A stretch of 64,000 bases of DNA from Podarcis filfolensis (taxonomy: Eukaryota), in NCBI GenBank assembly GCA_964270895.1, contig OZ185435.1. One strand, given 5' to 3'. Shown piece by piece: positions 2,175 through 63,750 of the stretch. The stretch's first letter is position 1, and the number at the start of each line of letters is the position of its first letter. A program made the position numbers and the translations under genes. The notes below the pieces were generated by a model, which made no database searches, was not told the DNA's origin, and was given only the letters and a program-made list of their open reading frames with translations.

Positions 2175-4156
2175 ATTAAGCTCTGCCGAGTTTACTTCTG
2201 AGTAGAGATATATGTAGGATCATGTTCAGTTAGAGAGCCTTCTTCCCCTTGCATCTTTTATTATTCAGGGAAATAAGAATCGCACCAGGAGGCGTTGCGG
2301 GTGGCTTCTGGTTAGTGGCGAGCTGAAACCTGGAGCTGCCTCCTACGCTAGTTCAATAAACTAGTGCACCTAAGCATATGCAGAGTGCACATTTCTCTAC
2401 TGAGTAGGAACAACCAGGACTCCAGCCAAGTTTCTTGAACCTCACACAACTCATTCTAGAAATTAAATTCTGTCCTACCAGTTCTAAATATGGACTATCC
2501 GCTGCTTTTTATTTAAAGTTGTTTTGTGTATGCATCTTTCAAGCCAGAATGATCTAGGACTGGGAAATCATTTCTAAAAACACATTCCTAGACATGTGCA
2601 TTCAGAAATGAGTCCCTCTGTGTTTAGTGGGTATTAGGTCACAGGTATTGGTCATCCAATATACCCCCTGGGAGTAAATCTTATTCAGCTCAGTGACGCT
2701 TAATTCTGAGTAGACATGGATATGATTATTGCACTAACAGTCTTTCAGGAATGGCTCCCTCAGGTTTTCACATGCAGGACCTGCTCTCTACCTGCTTGGG
2801 GAAGTGTTGCTTTGTTGCAGACTTGTTCAGTGGTTGAAGTAACAAAGTAGTTGGCACCCAGTTAAACCTGAATTTGTTTTCACCTGTCATGGAGTAAACA
2901 GGCCTTCCATGACTAGGCCTAGAAAAATGTAGCACAGGAAGTGTAGAGGAGGCACCTTTAAAACAGCAAGGCAACCTTTCCTTTGGAAAGGTTACTATTC
3001 CTTCTCAAGAGTCAAGAAACGTGCTCTGTGAATCATAAACCCTGCACCTCCAGTCATACACCCCAGCCTGTCTTTCTCTCCATTTTTGACAGAGAGGGGT
3101 TCCATTGGCTTTTAAGAGTTATGTGATGGGCAGAAATTCAACAGGGAAGCTTACTCCAACATGGCTTCCTTTAGATTGTGAAAAGCTCCCCATTACACTT
3201 CTGCCTCAAACAGATGCTATTAAATTATTATCAAATATTGTTAAGAGGGATGGGGAAATGGAATTCCACTGGGCCATGAAGGTCTTTTATGGAGAGAAAA
3301 GTATTCCAGCTGTTGTGTTAAGCTCCAGCCCAGCTGTGCTCAGTTTGTTTTGGTAAGTTCATTGAGACTCTTGTATCAGAAACAAGCAAGTCTTGTGGCA
3401 CCTTCAAGAATGATTTGTTGTGGCAGAAGCTTTCATGAACTAGCACGCACGACATCAGATGCATGAAGTGTTATCCTCAGTTGACAGATAATATATACAT
3501 GCACATAGCTGTAGAGGGGGAAATGTAAACAGTGGGTCAAAGAGGCTATAAAATGCAAAGGGTTGCAGCAGGTCTGTGACGTTTTTGTGCAGAGCTCAAA
3601 TGTATACAAGATAAGCACAGACTGGTGTACTCTCAGCAGCAGTCACTATAATCCTATTGATCTTTCTTTGCAGTTTATTGATGCTAGTGTTTTTAAGGTG
3701 TGTTTTTTTCCTTTTTGAGAGTTTTTGTAGTTCATGAAACCCCCCATATGGGTTCTATGGGAAGAGTGGGGCATGAATCATTTACTATGCAATGCTAATT
3801 CAGCACTTCCATAGCATGTTTGCAGGGGAGAACCACAGTCCCCATTAGGTCCAAATTGAACATAACTGAATTTAATGATAAATTCTAATTTAGCTATTTT
3901 ATGCTGGAGTATCCCTTATAAACCTTTTTTTTTGTGAAGCATGGCCATATTGAGGATATCAGAAATGTTCTCCCACCACTTTGTTTATCCTATGGGGACA
4001 GCAGAAGGACTTGGTTTGTTAGTGATGCACTATGTTATGTTGGAGCTTGAGACCCATAGGAGAGAGTTGGTTGGTTACCTATTATAATGCAAGAATTTCT
4101 TGACATATTTGTGTGTTTCCTACCAAAGATTCCTAAATGGATGCTTCAGTTTAGAG

Positions 4157-4294
4157 CAGGGGTGAGGAAACTTTGCTCCTCCAGATGTTACTGAACTACT
4201 ATTCCCATCAGCCTTGACTAATGGCCGTGCTGACTGGGGCTGATGGGAGATGTAGTTTAGCAACACCTGAAGAACCAAACATTTCTCCTCCTTG
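4157..4294. mobile_element. Hairpin hAT MITE, older copy
   Basis: caggggtgaggaaac start; palindromic arms (actactattcccatcagcc / ggctgatgggagatgtagt); degenerate 8-bp flanks gtttagag / ctccagag. Confidence 0.65.
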
Positions 4295-31863: not shown

Positions 31864-33571
31864 CTCTAGAGTATTCTGTTTTGTTGTGTGTGTTTTTTAA
31901 AGGAGTAAGTGGCAGGGTGTGGAATTTTATTTTCCTTCTTCCTGGCAGGCTTCTGTGCCTTCAGCAAGATGACAGGCAGAAATTCAGCAGCGAAAGTGTG
32001 TTGTTGTCCCCTCTCCCCACCAGCCCGTACATTTCAATCTATGAGGGAGAAAAAGCTACATGAGCTGCCTTTTTACTTCTCACACAGCTGCTAACAGCGC
32101 AGGAGCCTTGCCAGAAAAAGCTGACACTCTTACTTTCTAAAAGGCTTCTTGAAGAGCTGCATGGAAGGGGAATTCCACCAGGTCCAGATTCTCCGCTGGA
32201 GTAATTACACTTCTTCATTCAGACACTCAAGAGAGGCATTGTCAAGGGTGGGGGCAGCAGGGCCTGTGAGGGGTGGCCTAGCGATATACTGTGGCCTAGG
32301 AAGAAGCCTGAGGGCCAGAAAGATGGGCCTACAGGGCCACATTCAATCGCAAGGTCTGCAGCTCCACCCCCTTCCTGGAGGCAGAACCTTCTCACATGTG
32401 AGCCAGTCCAGAAGCTTTGAACCCTCTTCTCTTCCAATATCCCTCAAGTGAAGCAATTGTCCTGCAAACAACTAATGGAAGATGGAACGGGGAACCGTCG
32501 CAGGCCGCACAAGAGGAAGCAGAATTTCCTCATCGACCTCAGCAATACCCCCTTCCCCAATTCATTTGTACAGATCTCAGCTCAGCTGCTCACAGATCTC
32601 AGCTCAGGCTTGAGAACAAGGCGAGGGAGGGGGGAAGAGACAGTAGATTACAATCTACTGGGAGATCTCTGGGTGACCTGCAGTAGATCCTCAGGGGTTC
32701 TGACTCCCAATTCTTGAGCAACTAGCAAGAACAAAATGACCCGCCCACCCCCCAAAATCAAAATTAGGCTGCTGAAATGAAGAAAGCTAACTGAGACTGG
32801 ACATTTGCCCAAAATGGTGCTGAAAACAAATTCCTGGGCTCCAAATGTGCTCAGTAGCACCCTTTGTTTATTAATTCTAACTCTGGGTATCTTGCACCTG
32901 GCCTGGGTTGGTCAATCTTGGAAATTCTGGTAGAGGCGAAAGTGGATTGACCAAAGTCTGCCCACCCCTGCTCTACAGCACCAGCCTGGGATGTAGAGTT
33001 GACCAGACCCAAGGCAGGACAGGGACTTATTATCTTTGGATAATTTGGACAAGATAATTTGAGCTGGCACAGCAACTGCCGCCCTTGCAGAGCTATGCGC
33101 TTTCCAAAAAAAATCCTCATTAATAGATACAGGATCACTGGCTTTCTTTGCATTGGGCCACCCTAGAGAAGGAGAAGACTTGTTAACTCCTGATCTGAAT
33201 GAAGAAGGCGAATGGCCTTTCCAAGGGCTGGATGGTAAGGACAAATTCAGGGGCCAAGCGTTCCCCAACTCCAGTGAAGGAGCAAGTGACAAAAGAAGTT
33301 GCACCTGCAGCACCGGCCCCTGCGGCCAAAGCACAGCAGCACTTTCCAGGCCAGAAGCTGGATTCCTAAGGGGAAGGACGAGACTGAGTATGCAGCAAGC
33401 AGCTTCCATCACAACTCTGCAGATATCCAATCCCACCACAGCCCTTTTAAAAAGGAGGTCCTCCTTCTGCCCCCCTATTTCTTCTCACTGGCGTTGACTC
33501 CTGGCTAACCGGAGCACAGGCAAGCTGGTCTTGCCTGAACTCATGACCCCTGCAGAGGCTCTGCTACTCAC

Positions 33572-39624: not shown

Positions 39625-42429
39625 CTTTAGAATCTCCATCCTTCTATTGTTCCAATCCTGGACAACTTCTTGAGGATGTATCTGCATTTTTGTCCCAATT
39701 CCAATAGATAGCCCATGAAAAAAAATGGAGGCACCACCTAGGCTCCAAGGGTGTGATTTATATGTCCCTTATGTTTCAAGACAGACACACACACGGAAGC
39801 TGTTAGGTCAACCACCAGCAAAGCAACAATGATGAAAGATAACGTATGCTAGGGCCAAACTGCTTGTGGTTTCTGTTAAGTCTCACCTTCCTATGGAGTG
39901 TCTGAGAGTGAATGCTCTGTCTCTGAGAAGCAAGGTAATGTGATTTGTGAACAGGACTATGCATGCTGTGCCAAGACGGTATCATGCAAGGCAAGGAAAT
40001 AAATTATACTTGGGCACCCAAATCTTGCTTTTCATTAAAAAAAAAAGCAAGTTTCTTGTCTTTTTGATCTACAACAGTATATGTGTGCAAGGCCAGAGGG
40101 AGGATGAGTCAAATTTCTAGTGGTCAAGAGGTGGGGATTCTGTGCCCTGCACTGCTTCCCTGCACCGCCTCACATGACTGCTAGGAACAGAGCAAATTAT
40201 GCAAAAAATAAATATGCAAATATATTGACTTGCATATTTTAATATAAAACACACACTCTGCTCATCACCCAAACCCAGTTTCCTCCTCCACGTGATTTCT
40301 ATTGGGCTGTACCAAAAGGTCTACATGTTATTACGCATTCAGATTAGGGGAACTAAGAATTTCTTCAGCTTCTGCCTGAATTAACCTGTTCTGGAATTAC
40401 CCTGTTCTCCTCCTGCTCCAAATCAGCTTCCCGGGCAAAATTTATGGGGCCACACTTTAGAAGTCCCCCAGCAAAGTTCCCACAGTGAGATGTGCAGAAG
40501 AGATGTATCTGATCCTCCCTAGCTAATGGGAAGAAGCAGTCTCTAATGCTTGTTTTCAGCAGATGTCTTGAATCCAAAACAAATGCAGTTCTGTACATAT
40601 CCTTGACACTCCTCCCCATGCTTTCCTTACCATTCCAGCTACCTTATTTCTGCCTATCAGTAAGCTATCAATAAGACCCCTGTGCTGTGATCACAGCAAG
40701 ACCTCCATGTACGCCTCTTAATCCTTAGTCTTCTTCTAGGGCATAGTCTTGCTTCCCTAATTGGTAATCTGAGCTCTCCCCAGCTCTTTAACAGATAAAA
40801 TGCTCAATTTCCTAAAAGCCAAATTTCACAAGTACCTCCTATGTGTAGATATATTGTCAATATTGCCTTTCACTCCTCTACTCCCTCTCCTGCCCCCAAA
40901 ATAGATGGCTATTGAGCTGGGAGAATTGAAGGCCTCCCTGGTGTACTTTGAGGAAGAGGAAAGGAGGAGAAGGCAGCAGCAGTTACACTGTCATTACAAG
41001 TGGTGCAGAAAGAGATGAGGGAGGGGCAGAAGGGCAAACGATGGCTTAAATTCTGCCACCCCAAGACAGTTATCTTAAATTGGACTCAGGGATGTGACTC
41101 AGGCAGGCAGGGGGTTGCCAGTGAGCAACTATTAGCTGAGATGTGATGCAAGTGAAGGGGCTGCTCTCTGGACTCCTATGCATCCCAAAATTATTTCCTC
41201 CAAAGGCTATGGAACTTCACCCAAAGTTCCCATGTGGGCACTTCCATACCGAAACCAGCAACCGTGTGGGGGGGGAAAGAGCACAGAGGCTGCTGAGGCT
41301 TTCAGGCATCGCCATGGTAACACATCTGCATCATCCTCTGAAAGGGCCGCTTGCCATTTCTTGCGGAAAGGGGCCCTTTGGAGCTTTCTCAGAGACCCTC
41401 CGTCCTGCCTTCAGTGGCAGGGGAGCAGTTCTGCTTGAAGAGACTTCTACAATGGGGATAACCCAAGGTTATTGGCTAGAACAGGGAAGGGTAGGGTAAG
41501 CCAGATGTCACATGGGAGGTGGAAGGGAAGAAGGGAGAGCGAGGAAGGCCTCCATTTGCCCATGTGCTGAAGGTGCAGGATGCTTGTCAGGCCCCACCCT
41601 GTTGCCCTTGGTAACTGCTGCCAGGAAGCAGAGTTAAGGGTTGGTTGGCCGAAACCATAGCACCTTTGACCCACCTGGATGACCAGTCAGATTTTTTGAC
41701 TTAATGCTCCCACTTGTGTCTCCCAGCAAGAAAATGCCCTTACATGAAGCAGAGCCCCTGCCCAACACATTTCCCCTTATCTGCACGATGGTGACCTTGC
41801 ACTGCATTTGCGCACGCTTGCAACGTTGTTTGTGCAGCCCCAGTTCCTGCTTCAACTCAGGTGGGCAAAGGCCTGGTCGCTATCTAACAGCACACTACCA
41901 AGACACAGCGCTGGATTGCACAGGTCTGTACAGACAGATTTTCAAAAACAAAAACAAACCAACCACCCACCCAAAACAGAAGACAGTGGTTAGGGCATCT
42001 TGAGGCCGACTCCAGGCACTGCCAGAGCCAAGCTGTATGCTCCTCATATCACTCAGCAGCACAGTTGCTGGACTGCTCAGAAAAAAGCACTATATAGGCA
42101 TATATACAGCCTGATTTACTAGCCTGCTTTTCTGCTGTGGTTAACACAATTGCATATTACACATACACAGAGAGAATCACTATGTGTGTTTGTGATGGGG
42201 TGGGTGGAATTGTGACGTGTGGGTAGGGAAAAACACAGAAGGAGGGGGTTTGCTACTGCAAGAGGTGCTGGGGGAATGATCTCCAAGGATCTGAGCAGCC
42301 GAATGAAGAATCAGGAAGCAGAGACAGGACACCCTGACAATCCATCATCATGCCCACACTATATCAACACAACCACGTACACGGAAAGACGCCGCTTTAG
42401 CGAGCCCTCTTTCCACCCCACTCCACCCC

Positions 42430-43900
42430 GCTACATGGACGGGGTAGATCACGGACCCTGCTGCTTGGGCCAAGGGCAAGTCGGCTCGGTGCATTTCAGA
42501 AGAGCGAAGCTCAGTCATATACAGACCCATTTATGCGCTCGCTCGCGTACACAAACACCCAGCGCCCATCCTAAGCCCGGCGCGCCTCGCGCGGGGCCCC
42601 GGCGCCGCACCTGCCCCCTCCGCCTGCCCCCCTTGCCGGGCTCACCTCGGCTCAGGTAGCACGATCTTCTTGCTGGCCCGGGCTGCCGGAGTGGATTTAC
42701 TTTTCTCCATAGCCATCAAGTAGCTCACATCGGCGAGCACAGCCTCCAAGTCGGCCATCTTGCCAGGAAATATTTCTTCTGCTTTCCTTTTTCACAATCA
42801 ATTCTCTTATTATTCCAGCGGCCTCTGCGGCTCCCTCGCCGCCGCCTCCTCCCGGTCGGGGTGTGTGTGTGTGTGCGTGTGTGTGGCCGCCTGTGCTAGG
42901 GGGAGGGGAGGGAGAGCGAGGGGGGGAGGCGAAGAGAGGGGATCTGGCCCCCCAACCCCTCTTACAAACAGACCCACATGATGCCCGTGCAGAGAAGTGG
43001 CGGCCCTTCCTTAGTTCCTGGGCTGCGGCTTGGCCCCGCTGCCCTCCGCTCCTGGCTTGCCTTCCTCCTCCAGGGCTGGCGGGCTCTCTCGGTGTGTGTC
43101 CTGAGTGTGTGTGTGCGTCTTGTGTGTGTTGCGCGCGCGCGTGCAGGGAGGGCTGCCGCGGCCGCTGCTGTTGCTCCCGCTGCCTGTCAACGCGGAGCGG
43201 CGGCGGCGGCGCAGGGGTGCGGGGTGGCGGCGTCGGCGGCGGCTTGCTGCCTTTATCTGTCAGCGCTTTTCTTCTTCCTCTGCTTGCGATCCAAGGCGGA
43301 GAAGCAGCGTCGCGCAAGTGCCCGAGGCAAGCACAGCCGAGGAGCTCTCGAGCTCCACGCGCTGATTCAATGCGGGGCGCTTAAGGCGGGAGCCGAGCGG
43401 ATCCGAAACTCGCACACGCTCTCCTCCTCCTCCTTCTTCTTCTTCCTCCTGCTGCTGCTGTTGCTGCCCGTAGGTGGTTTTGTTTCTCCGCAGGGGGAAA
43501 GGACCTCCGGGGCCCGCCGCGCAGCTTCTGGCTTCCCCTCTCCGCTCGCTCCAGGGCCAGCTTAAAGCAACAGCCGCCCCTCGAGGGAAGCCTGCTTTGT
43601 ACATAGACACACACAGAGAGAAGAAAGTTAGTCGCCCGAGGCCGCCCTCTGGAGGCCCAGGGGAGACTTGCAGCTGGCTTGGCGCAGGCCGGGTGTCTTT
43701 CAGACCCTTTCGATTCAAGCGCGGCCCCAGGCAATACGCTGCGGCGGGCGCTCAAATCGAGGAGCGCTCGGAGGCCTAACGGGCCATGATTTCACCCGGC
43801 CGTTGCCTTAGCACGTCCGGTAGCATCCCGCATAAAATATCGGCCACAACTATAATTCCTTGCAACCCGTTTCGGGTTTTGACATCCACGTTTGGCCTCT
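42430..43900 (-). promoter_or_regulatory. CpG island: GRK2 promoter, 5'UTR and exon 1
   Basis: GC/CpG-rich block with (GT)n and (CCT)n/(CTT)n runs around the GRK2 start codon; TSS cannot be placed from sequence alone. Confidence 0.82.
42646..42758 (-). CDS. GRK2: GRK2 (ADRBK1) coding exon 1
   Basis: Kozak ggcaagATGG; [37 protein letters not shown](S)|gtgagc; 113 nt. The 21 exons sum to 2076 nt (691 aa plus stop). Confidence 0.98.
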
Positions 43901-51740: not shown

Positions 51741-53998
51741 CTTTTGGAGAAGGTCCAAGGACTGAACCTGGGACTCTTGCCTGCACAGCATGTTCTGTAT
51801 CACCTACTGAACTCTATGGCCTTTTCACTTTCAGGTAAATTTGTCTGTTGGTACTGATCTCATGGAGGAAGCTTCTGGACAGCTTCTTGAGAAGTTTTGC
51901 TAGAAAATCTCTGAACCAGAGGTTATGAATTAACCAAATGACAGTGGAAGGCAGGGATTGGAATTTCTGTCTTGCTGTATGTATATTTAAAGTATCCTGA
52001 ACTGGAAAGGAATATTACCTGCTAGGCAGAAATAGAAGGGATCTGAGTAGGGGAGAGGCCCTATACTGTAATCATGTAGCAACTTCCTCTCAATTCCAGT
52101 CTACACTGTTAAAGCTATTACCTTACTGTGAGATACAAATTACTTTGGGTCTTCAGAGTTGTAGAGGCAAATTTCATTACGAGCAACAGATAAAATCTGA
52201 TAAATCTTTGAAGCATTTTACATACTATTGACAAAAGAAGAAACAAGTCTGAAGCAAAGGTGACATAGATACGGTGCTTTTTTAAAAAATGAAATAACAA
52301 ATGTTTTGGTTTTGAACACTGTTCCTTGGCAAGGAAATAACTGGGCAACTTTTTAAGCTGCAACCTCTCTTGGGTTCAGTTCTTTGGCCCTGCAGACAAC
52401 GTGTGCACTGTTACTTCACTTCAGCTCTGTGGGGTAGAAGATAAGCTTGACTGAGAAATCAGTGGAAGATAGAACTAGGATCTTTATGACAACTTGATTG
52501 GGTTATTTCTGAAGCTGCCATTCTGACTTTTTCTAGAAAATGGCTAGCCGCCCTTCTCTGGATCAAAAACCCATCTCCCCAGTCACACAACTGCTTGTTG
52601 AACACCAGGTACCTCTTTGAGAGAAGATAGCTTAAAGCCTTCAGTCCCCTGCATGCTTGAGGATGTTTGCATGGATAGATGGCTTGACATACTCCACTCA
52701 GCTTTTATTAATGGGATCACTATGACCTTACTTGGCAAGGAAAACATTTGGTGACTGTAGCTTCCACTTTTGAAAAGCAGTATTGTGGATGAAAAAAACC
52801 CCCTCTGGAACCTCCTAGAACAGCTATTCAAGATCACTTGAATTAGGTGGTTTATTATTACATTGTAACATCACATAGGAGGGCTAGGAATGGAGAAAAC
52901 ACAGAATAGAGATCTTTTGAAACAGCTTATTAAAAATTAGAACCAAGCTGGTTCAGGATTTCAGGCTTAGTTCCAATAAAGACTATTGGGTTCAGGTTGG
53001 AAAATTGCTGCTAAACTTCAGTTTAACTTGTGAGTCATCAACATAATACGAATGCCCAAGATTTTGTGACCATTTCCATATGTTAAGTTGGAAGCCAACA
53101 ACAGAGTAAAACAGCAAAATTCAATCCCGTCTCCGACACTCAAGTCAAAATGTGCAAGTCAAAATCCAGATTTGTCAGCCAAATTCCACCAGTTAGTCAC
53201 AAGCAGAAGTGTTTCTCAGATTATTAGATGAAGCCCACTAGTAATAACTCATATTTAATTTCTTAAAACACAAAATAGCAGTCAATATCAGGAGCTGTAA
53301 GTTTGGCTCATGCCATCCATGGTGAGTCAGGTATATGACTGGTTTTCAAGCCTTTTACCAGACTCTCAATGTGTGTGTTTCTGTACATGCACATAACAGA
53401 TTAATCTTTACCAACGAAGTGCCATTCAAAACCCGCAGTGTAATTGCAGATGAATTCAACGACAGGAACAAAGTAATAATAGAAGACTTTGGTGTTTAGG
53501 TTCTAATGTGGCCCGTGACTCTACTATACGTAGGCCAGGGGCCTTCTTGTGACATCACAGCCGCTAAGCCAATGGCAGGAAGAGGGGCTGCCCTGTCTTC
53601 AGAGCACCTCTGTTAAAGACATCAACAGGCGGGGCAAGCAGAAGTCAAGGCAAAGTTGTAGCAGGTTAAGGGATGAGGAAAGACAGCAGGACAATAAGGA
53701 AAATGAAACAACTTTTACAGCTCACTGAACAGAACAGTCCTTTAGGACAGTGGGCTCTAGGTCAGGAATCAGAGACTGCATTTTATAAGGAGGGCCATGG
53801 GATTGTGACCAAGTCCCAGTGAGGTCCTTCTTAAATTCTCTTGTCCTCGATGCTTTTATAGATGCGGTATCATTTTAAATCACCCCTCTGTATCTAGGTA
53901 GAACTATTATTTTTTATTTTTTTTAAATGGCAGCTAGGATATTCAGGCCTCCAGTTGCACATTAGAACTTTAGTCTGGTTTGATATATGAGCTTAGAT

Positions 53999-54746
53999 CA
54001 GGGGTCAGCAAACTTTTTCATCAGGGGGCCAGTCCACTGTCCCTTAGACCTTGTGGGGGGCCGCACTATATTTTGAAAAATATAAATACCCTGCAAGCCA
54101 GTCCTGCAGCTGCCTCCGGACCTGGAGGAACGTGTTCTGCACGCGCTCAGGAGCATGTTTCGGTGCCCCCCGTTCACCGGCCTTGTTGACGAGCAGCAGC
54201 CGCTCCATCAGCCCATCCCTGCAGAGCTCCCAGGTGGCGTGCACCATGTGCTGCGGCCCATGCATGTGGAGCGCTGGGCAGGTGGCGCGCAGCTCACCCT
54301 CCAGCTGTTCCGGCGCGGCCGCCGAGCGCACCACCAGCAGGTGTGCTGAGCCGGGCACCAGGCACGGGGCCAGCAGGCACGCCAAGCTCTGGCTGAAGCC
54401 CACAATGCGCCCAATGCGCCCGTCATGATGCCCATGGTGCAGCCCAGACCTGCTGCCCACCCGCCAGCCTCTCCGTCCATGGCTGCACCGGGTTTACCTC
54501 AGCATGTGGGTGGCGAGGCTTCGGATTGGCTGCAGGAACTTCTTGCAGCCAATCCGCAGCTGTGCCAGCGTCGGGGAAGTCAGTCCCAGTGTGGTGAGGC
54601 ATCTGCGGCTTCTTTTCAAGGAAACGCCATGCTGTACCAGTTTTGCTCAGCACAGGGCCTGACCAAACGGGCGGCAGTTCCGCGGGCTGGATTTATGAGC
54701 CTGGTGGGCCGTATCCGGGCCCCGGACTGAAGTTTGCTGACCCCTG
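53999..54746. mobile_element. Non-autonomous hAT element carrying a captured host-gene fragment (Pack-TIR-like)
   Basis: Perfect 17-bp TIRs CAGGGGTCAGCAAACTT (53999-54015) / AAGTTTGCTGACCCCTG (54730-54746); 8-bp TSD gcttagat / gcttagac; MITE-like subterminal sequence on both sides of a ~580-bp GC-rich interior. Confidence 0.92.
54178..54480 (-). pseudogene. SPR: Disrupted sepiapterin reductase (SPR)-like coding exon 1 inside the hAT element
   Basis: gcagccATGG start; MDGEAGGWAAGLGCTMGIMTGA..(frameshift)..GFSQSLACLLAPCLVPGSAHLLVVRSAAAPEQLEGELRATCPALHM...ERLLLVNKAG|gtgaac. Aligns by eye to human SPR ([51 protein letters not shown]...QRLLLINNAG). Ends at a phase-1 donor inside the NNAG motif. 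Confidence 0.85.
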
Positions 54747-55778
54747 GCTTAGACCAACAGAAAACAGCCTTTGCTGAAGGGTTTCCAAATTCTCCCAAGG
54801 GGCTTTCTCTGCTTTGTAACAATTAGAGAAGTAATATTGGGTTAAACCTCATCTGAAAAATGGTTTTTGCAGAAATGGGGACTCAAAGCTGACCACCTTA
54901 TGGAAAAGTAAGAGACAATACTAATATTACAAACGTAGTCCGGAAAGCCCATTTCAAGATCTGACCCCCTTTTCCCACTATTTAATTTTCCCCACCACAA
55001 TTTAATTTTCCCCATCCCACAGATTTAAAGCTTTCTCATGTTACGTATGTTACATCATAGGGCATTTGTAAATGTAAAATTATGCAACAATCCCCTCTCT
55101 ACCTGTAAAGCCTTGTACCAACTCACTCTACAGTTTGAGCAACTAAAATCTTCTCTTAGCTACCTACAAGAAGGTTCAAGCTTGAGTAGTAAATCTATGT
55201 GGATAGAAATCTAACAGATGTTGTATGTCTATACTATCTAGTAACTTAGATCCCAAGCTATTTGCCATGCACACACACAAGTCCCATTGAATTTGCTCCC
55301 AGGTAGAGAGGATTGTCGGCTTAATTATTTTCCCTCACTGGCTTGATTCAGGCATCTTAGGATACTTCGGTGGAAGAACAAAACAAAGCTAACAAATGAC
55401 TAGTAAGTAAATACATAAATAAGGTAATAAAGTAAATAGAGCAAATTAACATTGTTTTAATATAGAACCTCAATACCATTCTACACCTCACCCAGGTAAG
55501 ATGTTCCTCGTGTGCTCACACAGGGTGGCCAACTTTTGATATCATGGCTTTACTAATTAGGCCAGGAAAATACTGGCCAACTGGTACCAATAACTACATG
55601 GTGAACAGCATGAATATTTAAAGGGGAGATGCACATTTGCAAATAAATATGTAGAGACATATGGCCAAGCACAGCCCCCTGGTATATGGATTTATTTTTC
55701 ATCCTCCAGTGACCTGGTTGTGCCAGCGTTTGCAGGGTTGTTCACCTCTTGCACTGAATGTGCTTACATGTTGTCTAT

Positions 55779-56134
55779 AAAGGTAAAGGTAAAGGTAAAG
55801 TTACCCCTGCCCGAACGGGCCAGTCGTGTCCGACTCTGGGGTTGCGCGCCCATCTCGCTTAAGAGGCCGGGAGCCAGCGCTGTCCGAAGACACTTCCGGG
55901 TCACGTGGCCAGCGTGACAAGCTGCATCTGGCGAGCCAGCACAGCACACGGAAATGCTGTTTACCTTCCCGCTAGTAAGCGGTCCCTATTTATCTACTTG
56001 CACCCGGGGGTGCTTTCGAACTGCTAGGTTGGCAGGCGCTGGGACTGAGCAACAGGAGCGCACCCCGCCGCGGGGATTCGAACCGCTGACCTGACGATCG
56101 GCAAGTCCTAGGCGCTGAGGTTTTACCCACAGCG
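55779..56134 (-). mobile_element. Sauria SINE, near full length, different subfamily
   Basis: (AAAGGT)n tail; box B GGTTCGAATCCC at 56073-56084; internal diagnostics differ from the 7842 and 9935 copies. Confidence 0.9.
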
Positions 56135-57900
56135 ACTGTACTCATGTTGGTTTTTAAAATACATTGCTATTTTGCAGATACACCAAAACATATCCATGAG
56201 CGAGGGTTCAGGAGCCTTCTGTATTTTACATCAGGATGCTTCAAAATTCAAAATCTAGAACCTTGTGGACATTTAAGTGTGAATCTTATGATCTGATCTT
56301 TCCTTAAAAACTTCCTCAGAGAACACTCAACTTCTTCCAGACCAAGCACACAGATTAAGAGGTACACAGTACATATCCTTCTCTTGTGATACGGGGACCC
56401 CAAACATAAATTAATCTAAATCAAAAATATTTTGCCCACCTCATGGTTTGTGGATATACACAAATAAATTGTCTGCAGAGTATCAGAACATCCAAAAGCT
56501 GCCGTTGGCTCAAGTAGCAATTTTCTGGTTTTAATCAATCCATGAATGAGGAAGAGGGTGGTATGGATTTAGGAAATTGGACTCTAGGGAGATGTTTAAA
56601 GGCCCCAAATATGGAGATTACAAATTAAGCTCAGCAGATGGTACTTTTCCTCCAAGAGGGAGGAAGCAATTTGTAGCCACAAACATTGCCCAAATTTGAG
56701 GCTTTAAGTTAAACGGTGGCAACATACACCACCAATGCTTGCTTTTGAAGGGTGTTGGTTGGGGTGGGGGGAGCTGGGGCAATAGAAAGCACAGTTTAAA
56801 TGCTGCTGAAGAGAGAGAAATTAATATTTTCACAAACAGAAGTACAAAGATTTTAAAAAATCAAAGGAAATTAATTTGCTATTAATTTCAACTATTTGTG
56901 CTCTATTATCTGACAGTTGTGCAACCAATGAGAGACAGTGTTTTCAAAGTAGCAAAGATGCTGGTGCATATAAAATATTGCCTTATATGGAGTCGGAAAA
57001 CTGGTCAATTTAGGCCAGAGCTGGTGGTGGATCTGCTAGGCCACACACAGACATCTTTCTTCTAAAGATCCTTTTAATTGGGAGATGCCAGGGATTAAAC
57101 CTGGGGCTGCTCAAGACAGTCCAAATGCATCACTGCATGACAGCTGCAGTCTTTGAGGTTTGCGTCCACCTTCTAACATTTCTTTCGGTTTCAGTTATAA
57201 AGGATATACCATCAGCATTAGCTTTTGACAGAATGTACACAAAGTATACCTCATTTCCTAAGAGAAGCTTGCAAACCAACCTGCAGAAGACACTTCGTTA
57301 ATTCCATTTCTTACAAAGTCTCTTTAGTTGGCTTTCATATACATACGCTAAGGAAGTGACATGTTTAACACTCTTTTACAGATCTGCGCGTATAAGCTCA
57401 CATGATCTTTGCTTTCCTGATAGGCCAGCATATTTCATACTGCATTTCCTGCATTCTCTCAGTCACTTGTTAAGTCAGGGCATCTTCAATAAGTGCCCCA
57501 AAGGCTATTCCGTAAAGGGCTCCAACGAGTTGGCCTTGCTATTATGAACTTTTTGTCTTCATGAACTAGATTTACCTGATTTTTCAGCTAGCAGCATACT
57601 TCTGCTAGATTAGCACTTGCTCCTATCAGAAGCCAATACATAGAATGAAAACTTGTTTTTATTTGACAGCTTTATCCTGTATCCTCAACACTAGTGTTCC
57701 CAGGGCAGCTTAGAATTAGAGATCTTTCCCCCATCCTCCAGGTATCTACAGTACTCATTTTCCCGAGCCTTTTCCGATTTTTCCAACATGTTTTGAAAAT
57801 TGAGTCCAGAAATCAGTTTTGGCCACAGTGCCCTGAAGTTACATTTATACCAACAGGTTGTAGCATGTGAGCCAGAAGGAACTGGATATAGTTCAGATAT

Positions 57901-61972: not shown

Positions 61973-62154
61973 CTAGCTGATTTTCTGGATCAGCTTTTCA
62001 TCAGACAGGCAATAGAGGCTGTTGATTGACAGGTCTGAGATGAAGTGCTCACAGGCCTTGCGGGTGATCTGCTTGCAACCACGCAGGTCTATCAGGGTGA
62101 CGTTAGAGATGCGCCGCAGGTACAGCAGGGACTGGTCTGTGAGCTTATTGCAGC
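61973..62154 (-). CDS. KDM2A: KDM2A last coding exon (LRR C-terminus, stop)
   Basis: (G)CNKLTDQSLLYLRRISNVTLIDLRGCKQITRKACEHFISDLSINSLYCLSDEKLIQKIS*; 182 nt; C-terminus is KDM2A-type. Confidence 0.96.
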
Positions 62155-63340
62155 CTGTGGAGAAGATGGCAAGTGCCATTATTTGCATAATGCCTAGCGC
62201 CACAAAGGTGTTCAGAGAACAAATGCACTGGTATAAACACTCAGAAAATACAAAGTGTCCAGACTCTTACATTACACAAATGATTCTTCTGGTTTGCAAG
62301 TGTGATTCTTCTATTCAAACTCTGACTTAAGAGCACTTGCTTGTTTGAATACCAACACACCTCAACCTGATAAGCCTCGCAACTTTTGACAGCTTAATAT
62401 GAACAAGTCTGACTTTTGTATTGACAAGACACACATAGGCAGCCACTCTTTGTGAATCAGGCAACAATGAACCATTAGACCCTTAGTAGCAGTTTCTTAT
62501 GCTAGAGGGAGACAGAAAAGCTGGAACATGATTATTTCCCTTAAGGCTCATTTTCCATCTGGCATGATCTGTCAGCCTGTATTGCATATTGAGGTGGTAT
62601 GTGTTTCTGCTACATAGGGATACTAGCTTCAAATATGTCACTACAAATACTTTTAAAGAAGACAGTATTGTAGTATATCCAGATCTGAATACTTGAAGAT
62701 TAAGTGCAGCCTCAGATTACTATTTTGTTAACCCCACAAACAATGAGGGCTGCGGGGCGGGGAAGGCCTGTAAAAAAAGGGAAATAACACCTGCCTCATT
62801 ATGAGGCTCCTGGGACTAAATCCTTCATTTATCCCTCTGGTCTGGAGCAAAAACTTCTTGGATAAATTTAGATGTATTTTCTCTTTCTTCCAGCAAGAGA
62901 GAAACCTTGGTGAGGCAAGAGGGAATACAGCCTTTACATTAGGGGTAAACTTGTAAGGTGGGCGGAATTGCCCACCTGTCAAAATCCCTTGTGCAGCTGT
63001 GCCCAATAGCCAGCTGGCTGTTGGGTGGGGTGGTGGGGTGAGGACCTCTGCACCAAGAGCTTTGCAAGCCCCTCACAGTGATGGAACAGACAGGCAGACA
63101 GCTGCCTGCTGGATCACTGCACAGGGCTTCCAAAGCTCCAGTTGAGGGGTGGTCGAGTCAAAGCCCACTTTCCCTTGCAAATGCACAATTGGGAGCACAC
63201 CCTGGCAGCCACATCTTTACCTGCTTCACAGCTGAACTGCTGGTGGATCAAATGCGGCCAACAGATCAGAGGTTCCCCACCCATTTTACATGGTCCACAG
63301 CCCTTAGCATGTCGGGGGAAACGATCAAAGATGCACAAAC

Positions 63341-63556
63341 CTGCCATGTTGATTTCAGTGAGCGAGTTTCGCGTGGAAGACCCCACAGCTGTTAATAGGT
63401 TGGTTGACTGGTCCGTAAGGTGATTGCAGTGACTAAGATCAAGTCGTGAGAGCAGAGGCATGTGGCGAATGATGAGCCGGAGTGTGGCATCAGTTATGTC
63501 CAGCCCAGCCAACCGGAAGTCTATCATGTTACGGAGTTTGCTGCGATTGTCTTGGC
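63341..63556 (-). CDS. KDM2A: KDM2A penultimate coding exon (LRR)
   Basis: (S)[71 protein letters not shown](G)|gtttgt; 216 nt. Confidence 0.96.
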
Positions 63557-63750
63557 CTGTAGGAAGATATGCAAGTAAGTCGGAAGGCACAGTCTCTTGT
63601 TTCTCTAGAGCATGCAAGTAGAAATTTCACCCTCTGGTCTGAATTTTTCCCTTTTAAGACCTGCATTGCATCCAACTCTTGTCAGCTTTCTCCCTTCCCC
63701 ACCTGACTAGCAAGCACAACATACTGGTATATCCAGAAGGCAAAACATAC

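Follow-up and report, generated by a model that had tools for sequence, protein, structure and literature searches.

The 64,000-nucleotide stretch of Podarcis filfolensis DNA analysed here (contig OZ185435.1, hereafter the window) contains, at positions 53999-54746, a 748-bp non-autonomous hAT element with a cargo derived from the sepiapterin reductase (SPR) gene. The element is bounded by 17-bp inverted ends, CAGGGGTCAGCAAACTT at 53999-54015 and its exact reverse complement at 54730-54746 (17 of 17 positions complementary), and is flanked by 8-bp target-site duplications, GCTTAGAT on the left (53991-53998) and GCTTAGAC on the right (54747-54754), which agree at seven of eight positions. GC content is 56-72% in the interior of the element compared to ~37-42% outside it. 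These measurements bear out a sequence-only reading of the window, which had described perfect 17-bp TIRs, a TSD agreeing at seven of eight positions and a GC-rich interior. No transposase ORF was found within the 748 bp. Elsewhere on the minus strand, ORFs at 61973-62203 and 63114-63617 are leucine-rich and end in ...DEKLIQKIS; by eye we take them to be the last exons of KDM2A, in keeping with the synteny remark of the sequence-only reading, and if that identity holds the element would lie ~7.2 kb downstream of the KDM2A stop codon. The GC-rich sequence at ~55780-56140, after a (GGTAAA)n run, is by eye presumably a Sauria-type tRNA-derived SINE and an ordinary repeat.

The exact 17-bp end motif has no further occurrence in the 64-kb window, and allowing up to three mismatches gave four matches across the window, with 0.35 expected by chance. 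No second copy of the element was found within the window, where there were just weak TIR-like matches at 4157-4173 (two mismatches) and 32954-32970 (three mismatches), which may be the ends of older related MITEs.

The plus-strand hAT terminal region at 53999-54093 consists of the 17-bp inverted end, subterminal sequence and a short junction stretch, and ~85 bp of it can be aligned to a cargo-less MITE of P. lilfordi (L003:43603-43922) and to every other copy of the family described below. On the other side, the terminal region at 54679-54746 (plus strand) includes the second 17-bp inverted end and has ~68 bp in common with the cargo-less MITE. This MITE is 320 bp long, has an AT-rich core and is flanked by GCATAAAC on both sides; another cargo-less MITE (L004:29385-29635, end approximate) likewise has an AT-rich core and an 8-bp duplication of its own. 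The cargo-less parent MITEs are 250-320 bp long and have the same ends as the SPR-bearing element. Since the two ends of the element align with the 320-bp MITE over 68 bp and ~85 bp, the SPR-bearing element is a derivative in which the MITE core has been replaced. That its interior differs from the standard interior of the MITE family, as had been claimed, agrees with the AT-rich core that the cargo-less MITEs have instead.

Assignment to the hAT superfamily is supported by both ends and target-site duplications. The perfect 17-bp ends start with CAGGG, in line with the hAT end consensus (C/T)A(A/G)NG, and duplications have the 8-bp length of hAT elements, matching at all eight positions in three family copies (L002, L003 and L005) and in the cargo-less MITE, and at seven of eight in the window and in L001. 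In a small sample of five sites, position 7 of the target consensus nTnnnnAn was A in four, but position 2 was T in only two. Ends and duplications support the proposal of a hAT-type, non-autonomous element carrying SPR exon 1. The ends presumably resemble those of mammalian MER58-type hAT-Charlie MITEs, which we take to share with this family CAGGGGTCAGCAAAC ends, GGCC-rich subterminal motifs, lengths of 250-320 bp, AT-rich cores and 8-bp duplications, whereas in the window element the core has been replaced by 585 bp of foreign GC-rich DNA.

SPR cargo and upstream module

We used the P. muralis SPR protein (P0020) and SPR locus (L007) as the native reference. SPR has three coding exons in P. 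muralis, with exon 1 at L007 5001-5325. On the minus strand, the cargo at 54094-54486 aligns to L007 4995-5411, running from 6 bp before the start codon through the whole of exon 1 and into the start of intron 1. The decayed exon 1 copy extends from the ATG at 54480 (context GCAGCCATGG) to the last exon base at 54178, where the exon-like part stops and is directly followed by GTGAAC. Downstream of it on the same strand, 84 bp of the window (54094-54177) correspond to the first ~90 bp of native intron 1 (L007 5326-5411). Native exon 1 ends in AACAACGCCG|GTGAG at a phase-1 boundary, so that the phase-1 exon end inside NNA(G), which the sequence-only reading had given for SPR, agrees with the native gene.

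Identity of the cargo was also assessed at the protein level. The minus-strand 138-aa ORF at 54044-54460, compared with PDB chains, gave eight matches, all of them to sepiapterin reductase (best E = 2.9e-5), with the match spanning the glycine-rich motif to LLLVNKAG. The SPR identity proposed earlier was thus upheld. Pfam searches with both minus-strand ORFs returned no family at E up to 1, the fragment being short and decayed. The peptide in the frame of the ATG, MDGEAGGWAAGLG..., resembles the N-terminus of P. muralis SPR, which falls in a cluster (≥90% identity) that also includes Zootoca and Lacerta proteins; the SPR N-termini of Rhineura and Phrynocephalus differ from the lacertid one. 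SPR exons 2 and 3 are absent from the window, which contains the exon 1 part alone.

Because intron 1 sequence follows the donor site, the cargo derives from the genomic DNA of a SPR gene in a lacertid and not from mRNA, as the sequence-only reading had argued. Matching inverted ends are absent from the native SPR locus. The element accordingly shows the arrangement that characterises Pack-TIRs, with an interior that is homologous to a gene elsewhere in the host genome and a parent gene without element ends.

On the 5' side of the exon, homology to the native gene is minimal. Matching sequence begins at L007 4995 and covers the last 6 bp before the ATG (54481-54486, minus strand), beyond which lies a 192-bp GC-rich module (54487-54678, minus strand) with an inverted CCAAT pair and without a match to native SPR upstream sequence. 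No counterpart of the module was found in the 5 kb upstream of Podarcis SPR or in the Rhineura and Phrynocephalus SPR loci. The upstream non-coding SPR sequence that the cargo had been said to include is thus missing, the native match stopping 6 bp before the ATG, and the expected contiguous identity across upstream region, exon 1 and intron 1 was found for exon 1 and the start of intron 1 but not for upstream sequence beyond those 6 bp.

Within the module, positions 54511-54567 form a near-palindrome with 28-bp arms (82%) and the arrangement GATTGG...CCAATC. The palindrome-bearing unit of ~80 bp occurs from zero to ~2.5 times per family copy. The module may have been captured as a second fragment or may derive from a different repeat. 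A related stand-alone palindrome with two inverted CCAAT boxes is present in P. lilfordi at L004:14227-14285, the only relative found outside the family; by eye, it follows what we take to be the end of a LINE-like ORF2.

Dispersed copies and their decay

We searched the 138-aa ORF against 1.84 billion representative proteins and then fetched the DNA of the matches. Among the matches from P. muralis, P. lilfordi and Zootoca vivipara were short 'hypothetical' proteins that are translations of decayed SPR exon 1, one of which runs through the intron copy into the hAT end and terminates in ...AGYLYFSKYSPAPHKV, like the ORF in the window. Full-length copies were delimited in P. lilfordi at L001 2704-3444 (duplication GTCCACAT / GTCCACAC), L002 2613-3426 (CTCCAGCT on both sides) and L003 2766-3462 (CCCCAGAC on both sides), and in Z. 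vivipara at L005 2655-3426 (GGCTAAAA on both sides), in addition to a 5'-truncated copy in P. lilfordi (L004, ~42026-42691). A profile search added two further copies (P0052 and P0053). Copies are present on at least seven P. lilfordi chromosomes, with at least two in Zootoca and at least two in P. muralis (from predicted proteins), and in wall-lizard genomes the family has come to occupy at least ten sites; both copy number and taxonomic range are minimum values, the visible copies being those called by gene predictors.

Homology between the copies breaks off exactly at the inverted ends, and their flanks bear no relation to one another or to the window. The junction between intron copy and hAT end (...GGCTTG|CAGGGTATTTAT...) falls on the same base in each of the six copies compared, while the native intron continues otherwise. 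Because the junction between cargo and transposon is identical in all copies, there was one capture, followed by a burst of transposition of the composite element, and the window copy is therefore a single dispersed and decayed member of an old family. A search for elements with the same ends and cargo and other TSDs, proposed earlier as a sign of mobilisation after capture, thus yielded several such copies in P. lilfordi and Zootoca, all with the same junctions and with different duplications. The accompanying implication that capture occurred at the present locus is contradicted by the one cargo/transposon junction common to all copies.

Divergence was estimated as K2P distance at sites that are non-CpG in the native gene, and ranged from 0.08 to 0.13 between copies and from 0.08 to 0.12 between copies and native gene. 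Fourteen changes are common to all or nearly all copies. The copies form one clade sister to the native gene (support 97/94, from a tree whose ultrafast bootstrap stopped short of full convergence and in which native gene and copies differ in base composition). Within this clade the tree is an unresolved star, such that the Zootoca copy is not separate from the Podarcis copies and the order of transposition is unreadable. These patterns suggest a burst that probably took place around or before the split between Podarcis and Zootoca.

The copies have decayed by CpG-to-TpG change, indels and frameshifts. In the SPR-derived block, the number of CpG sites falls from 70 in the native gene to 25-36 in the copies, the observed/expected CpG ratio from 1.06 to 0.57-0.75 and GC content from 80% to 67-70%, with an excess of TG/CA in the copies that matches the loss of CpG. 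Each family copy has its own indels, and the reading frames are broken differently in each. In the window copy, 8 bp inserted at 54402-54409 interrupt the TGxxxGxG motif and cause a frameshift, and 30 bp are deleted between 54261 and 54262. The frame of the ATG differs from the long SPR-like frame and, because of the 8-bp insertion, no single frame contains both the ATG and the NKAG region. Of the minus-strand SDR frame described by the sequence-only reading, the ATG, the NKAG motif and the donor are real, but the glycine motif is not intact. Of the coding sequence, the cargo includes exon 1 alone, with residues 1-108 of 268, with residues 109-268 lying in the two exons missing from it; with the glycine motif split and no Pfam domain recognised, a functional SDR is not encoded. 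The window copy is dead and cannot encode any portion of a functional reductase.

A separate question is whether the captured CpG-rich exon 1 and its donor could act as an alternative first exon or promoter for nearby genes, the window copy included. Such a role is compatible with the capture and spread described above, and some gene models point towards it. The Zootoca RefSeq protein XP_034995904.2 begins in the captured exon (L005 3001-3243) and uses the SPR donor, and in the P. lilfordi model P0007 the captured donor is spliced to an exon at a distance of 41 kb. Tan et al. (PMC8277862) report that Pack-TIRs, where transcribed, frequently give rise to chimeric RNAs, and the window copy retains a GC content of 0.69 and a CpG observed/expected ratio of 0.61. 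However, the supporting models are gene predictions, and the frames are broken differently in every copy. CpG loss in all copies moreover indicates long-term germline methylation, meaning silencing. XP_034995904.2 itself ('eL27-like', L005:3001-47887) continues with exons at 43.7 and 47.5 kb, 40 and 44 kb from the captured one, the second of them RPL27-like, and is probably a chimeric or spurious model. We therefore consider a first-exon function unlikely, although the one plausible activity of the window copy would be to supply a stray first exon, rich in CpG and equipped with a splice donor.

Origin of the family and relation to known elements

We conclude with high confidence that the window contains one dead copy of a multicopy, lacertid-specific, non-autonomous hAT family of the Pack-TIR type, which arose by one capture and then spread. 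The starting point would have been a MITE of 250-320 bp with an AT-rich core and CAGGGGTCAGCAAAC ends, the core of which was presumably replaced by two pieces. The first would be ~420 bp of genomic lacertid SPR, from -6 through exon 1 to approximately +90 of intron 1, and the second 170-280 bp of GC-rich sequence with the CCAAT palindrome, probably from another source. Replacement likely occurred by template switching during repair or replication, as proposed for Pack-MULEs and animal Pack-TIRs; the junctions are too decayed for microhomology to be called at the base level. The composite then spread to many chromosomes, presumably mobilised in trans through a hAT transposase, with a new 8-bp duplication at each insertion.

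A different origin would be a unique capture in situ, in which a MITE at this site was broken and repaired from an SPR template that included the SPR promoter, leaving a single-copy element. This would fit with the observation of Tan et al. that most animal Pack-TIRs are single-copy and attributable to transposition-independent gap filling (PMC8277862), and with the lack of a second copy in the window. Nevertheless, at least five other full or near-full copies have the same junctions, different duplications and unrelated flanks, and the upstream module is not SPR-derived, which makes in-situ capture very improbable. Less credible still is an origin by segmental duplication, or from a processed pseudogene inserted fortuitously between two MITE halves, which would account for SPR-like fragments scattered over chromosomes in the manner of retrocopies but not for intron 1 sequence kept right after the donor site, homology between copies that ends exactly at the inverted ends, or a separate 8-bp duplication and unrelated flanks for each copy. 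A processed pseudogene in the sense of an intron-less mRNA copy is ruled out by the 84 bp of intron 1 after the donor.

Exon shuffling in plants owes much to gene fragments captured by DNA transposons, but such capture is thought to be rare in vertebrates. The single-capture, multicopy family in lacertids resembles plant Pack-MULEs and Pack-TYPE elements, as is established for these systems (cf. PMC8903248), in that genomic gene fragments are carried with introns kept, GC-rich 5' gene ends are favoured, fragments from multiple sources may be combined and amplification follows capture. It differs from Pack-MULEs in being a hAT with 8-bp duplications as opposed to a Mutator element with duplications of 9-11 bp, and in its vertebrate host, with copies that show vertebrate-style CpG decay.

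The description of such capture as much less documented in vertebrates than in plants is fair, yet animal Pack-TIRs, hAT for the most part, are on record. Across 100 animal genomes, Tan et al. (2021; PMC8277862) listed 370 Pack-TIRs; hAT elements made up 208, and multicopy cases were just four (three in frog and one in alligator), the one described in detail having three copies; multicopy cases favoured GC-rich cargo. The sole lizard included, anoCar2, had none, with only 77 TIR elements scored in that genome. The closest parallel is Pack-hAT-N8_XT of Xenopus tropicalis, which carries 291 bp of the CAPSL 5' UTR (PMC8277862). Like the lizard family, it is a non-autonomous hAT with inverted ends, several copies with distinct 8-bp duplications and an interior taken from the GC-rich 5' portion of a host gene that lies on a different chromosome. 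Unlike it, the lizard family has at least seven chromosomal copies in one species and spans two genera, its cargo is a coding exon with a splice donor, and the same exon has been captured independently in two other squamate lineages (see below). Our literature search found no paper on transduplication in lizards, no multicopy squamate family and no recurrent capture of one exon. The lizard family thus belongs to the known Pack-TIR kind, and what sets it apart is its copy number, its cargo of coding exon plus donor and the recurrence within squamates.

SPR exon 1 in elements of other squamates

In Rhineura floridana, an 'SPR-like' gene (P0009) and the true SPR gene (P0022) are on different chromosomes. 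The former lies in a 996-bp element (L006:4900-5895) with ends CAGTGGCGTACC / GGTACGCCACTG and a perfect 8-bp duplication, TATAAAAC. Its interior aligns to Rhineura SPR, starting at -14 and including exon 1 and ~700 bp of intron 1, with identities of 85% and 78% over two segments. The cargo of this element is annotated as 'sepiapterin reductase-like'. In Phrynocephalus forsythii, a 2.5-kb element (L008:2803-5321) has ends complementary at 16 of 16 positions (TAGAGATGGGCACGAC) and a perfect 8-bp duplication, GTAGTAGT. Its SPR fragment (P0035) aligns to the SPR gene of the same species between codon 15 and +54 of intron 1, with 82% identity, making up just 330 bp of this large element. Degenerate telomere-like repeats are present inside the same element (L008 ~3740-3830), as is a weak inverted match to SPR upstream sequence (L008 4448-4564).

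In a joint tree, cargo and own native gene grouped together in each lineage, with UFBoot/SH-aLRT support of 100/100 in Phrynocephalus, 96/95 in Rhineura and 100/99 in lacertids. Because each cargo groups with the native gene of its own lineage, the three captures of SPR exon 1 were independent; the three elements involved have different ends, and each is flanked by an 8-bp duplication. For the single-copy elements of Rhineura and Phrynocephalus, gap filling in situ is possible.

The captured tract ends within intron 1 in all three cases and begins 6-14 bp before the start codon in two of the three. It is conceivable that squamate hATs capture CpG-island first exons often and non-randomly, such that SPR exon 1, at 80% GC, would be a hot spot from which three different hAT families each independently captured a copy, and that a promoter-proximal feature (open chromatin or an R-loop) would guide template switching. 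We put this idea forward tentatively, as somewhat more apt to be wrong than right; the squamate parallels were found by an SPR-based search, and the result is limited to SPR among genes. If true, lizards would be a vertebrate counterpart of rice with its Pack-MULEs. With parent gene, parent MITE, shared junction, many copies and two squamate parallels at hand, the lacertid family is a delimited vertebrate case that offers a system for studying how and where capture happens, which suggests that squamate genomes deserve a systematic screen.

Lacertid genomes contain many paralogues, 75-85% identical, of SPR exon 1 and intron 1, and annotators have turned copies into 'hypothetical proteins', 'SPR-like' genes and chimeric models. 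In wall lizards, SPR is the locus of orange coloration, and the orange morph of P. muralis maps to non-coding sequence just upstream of SPR (bioRxiv 10.1101/481895). Confounding of this colour association by the SPR-exon copies is unlikely, because the cargo includes just 6 bp of the upstream side of SPR, while short reads from exon 1 and intron 1 could be attracted by the copies.
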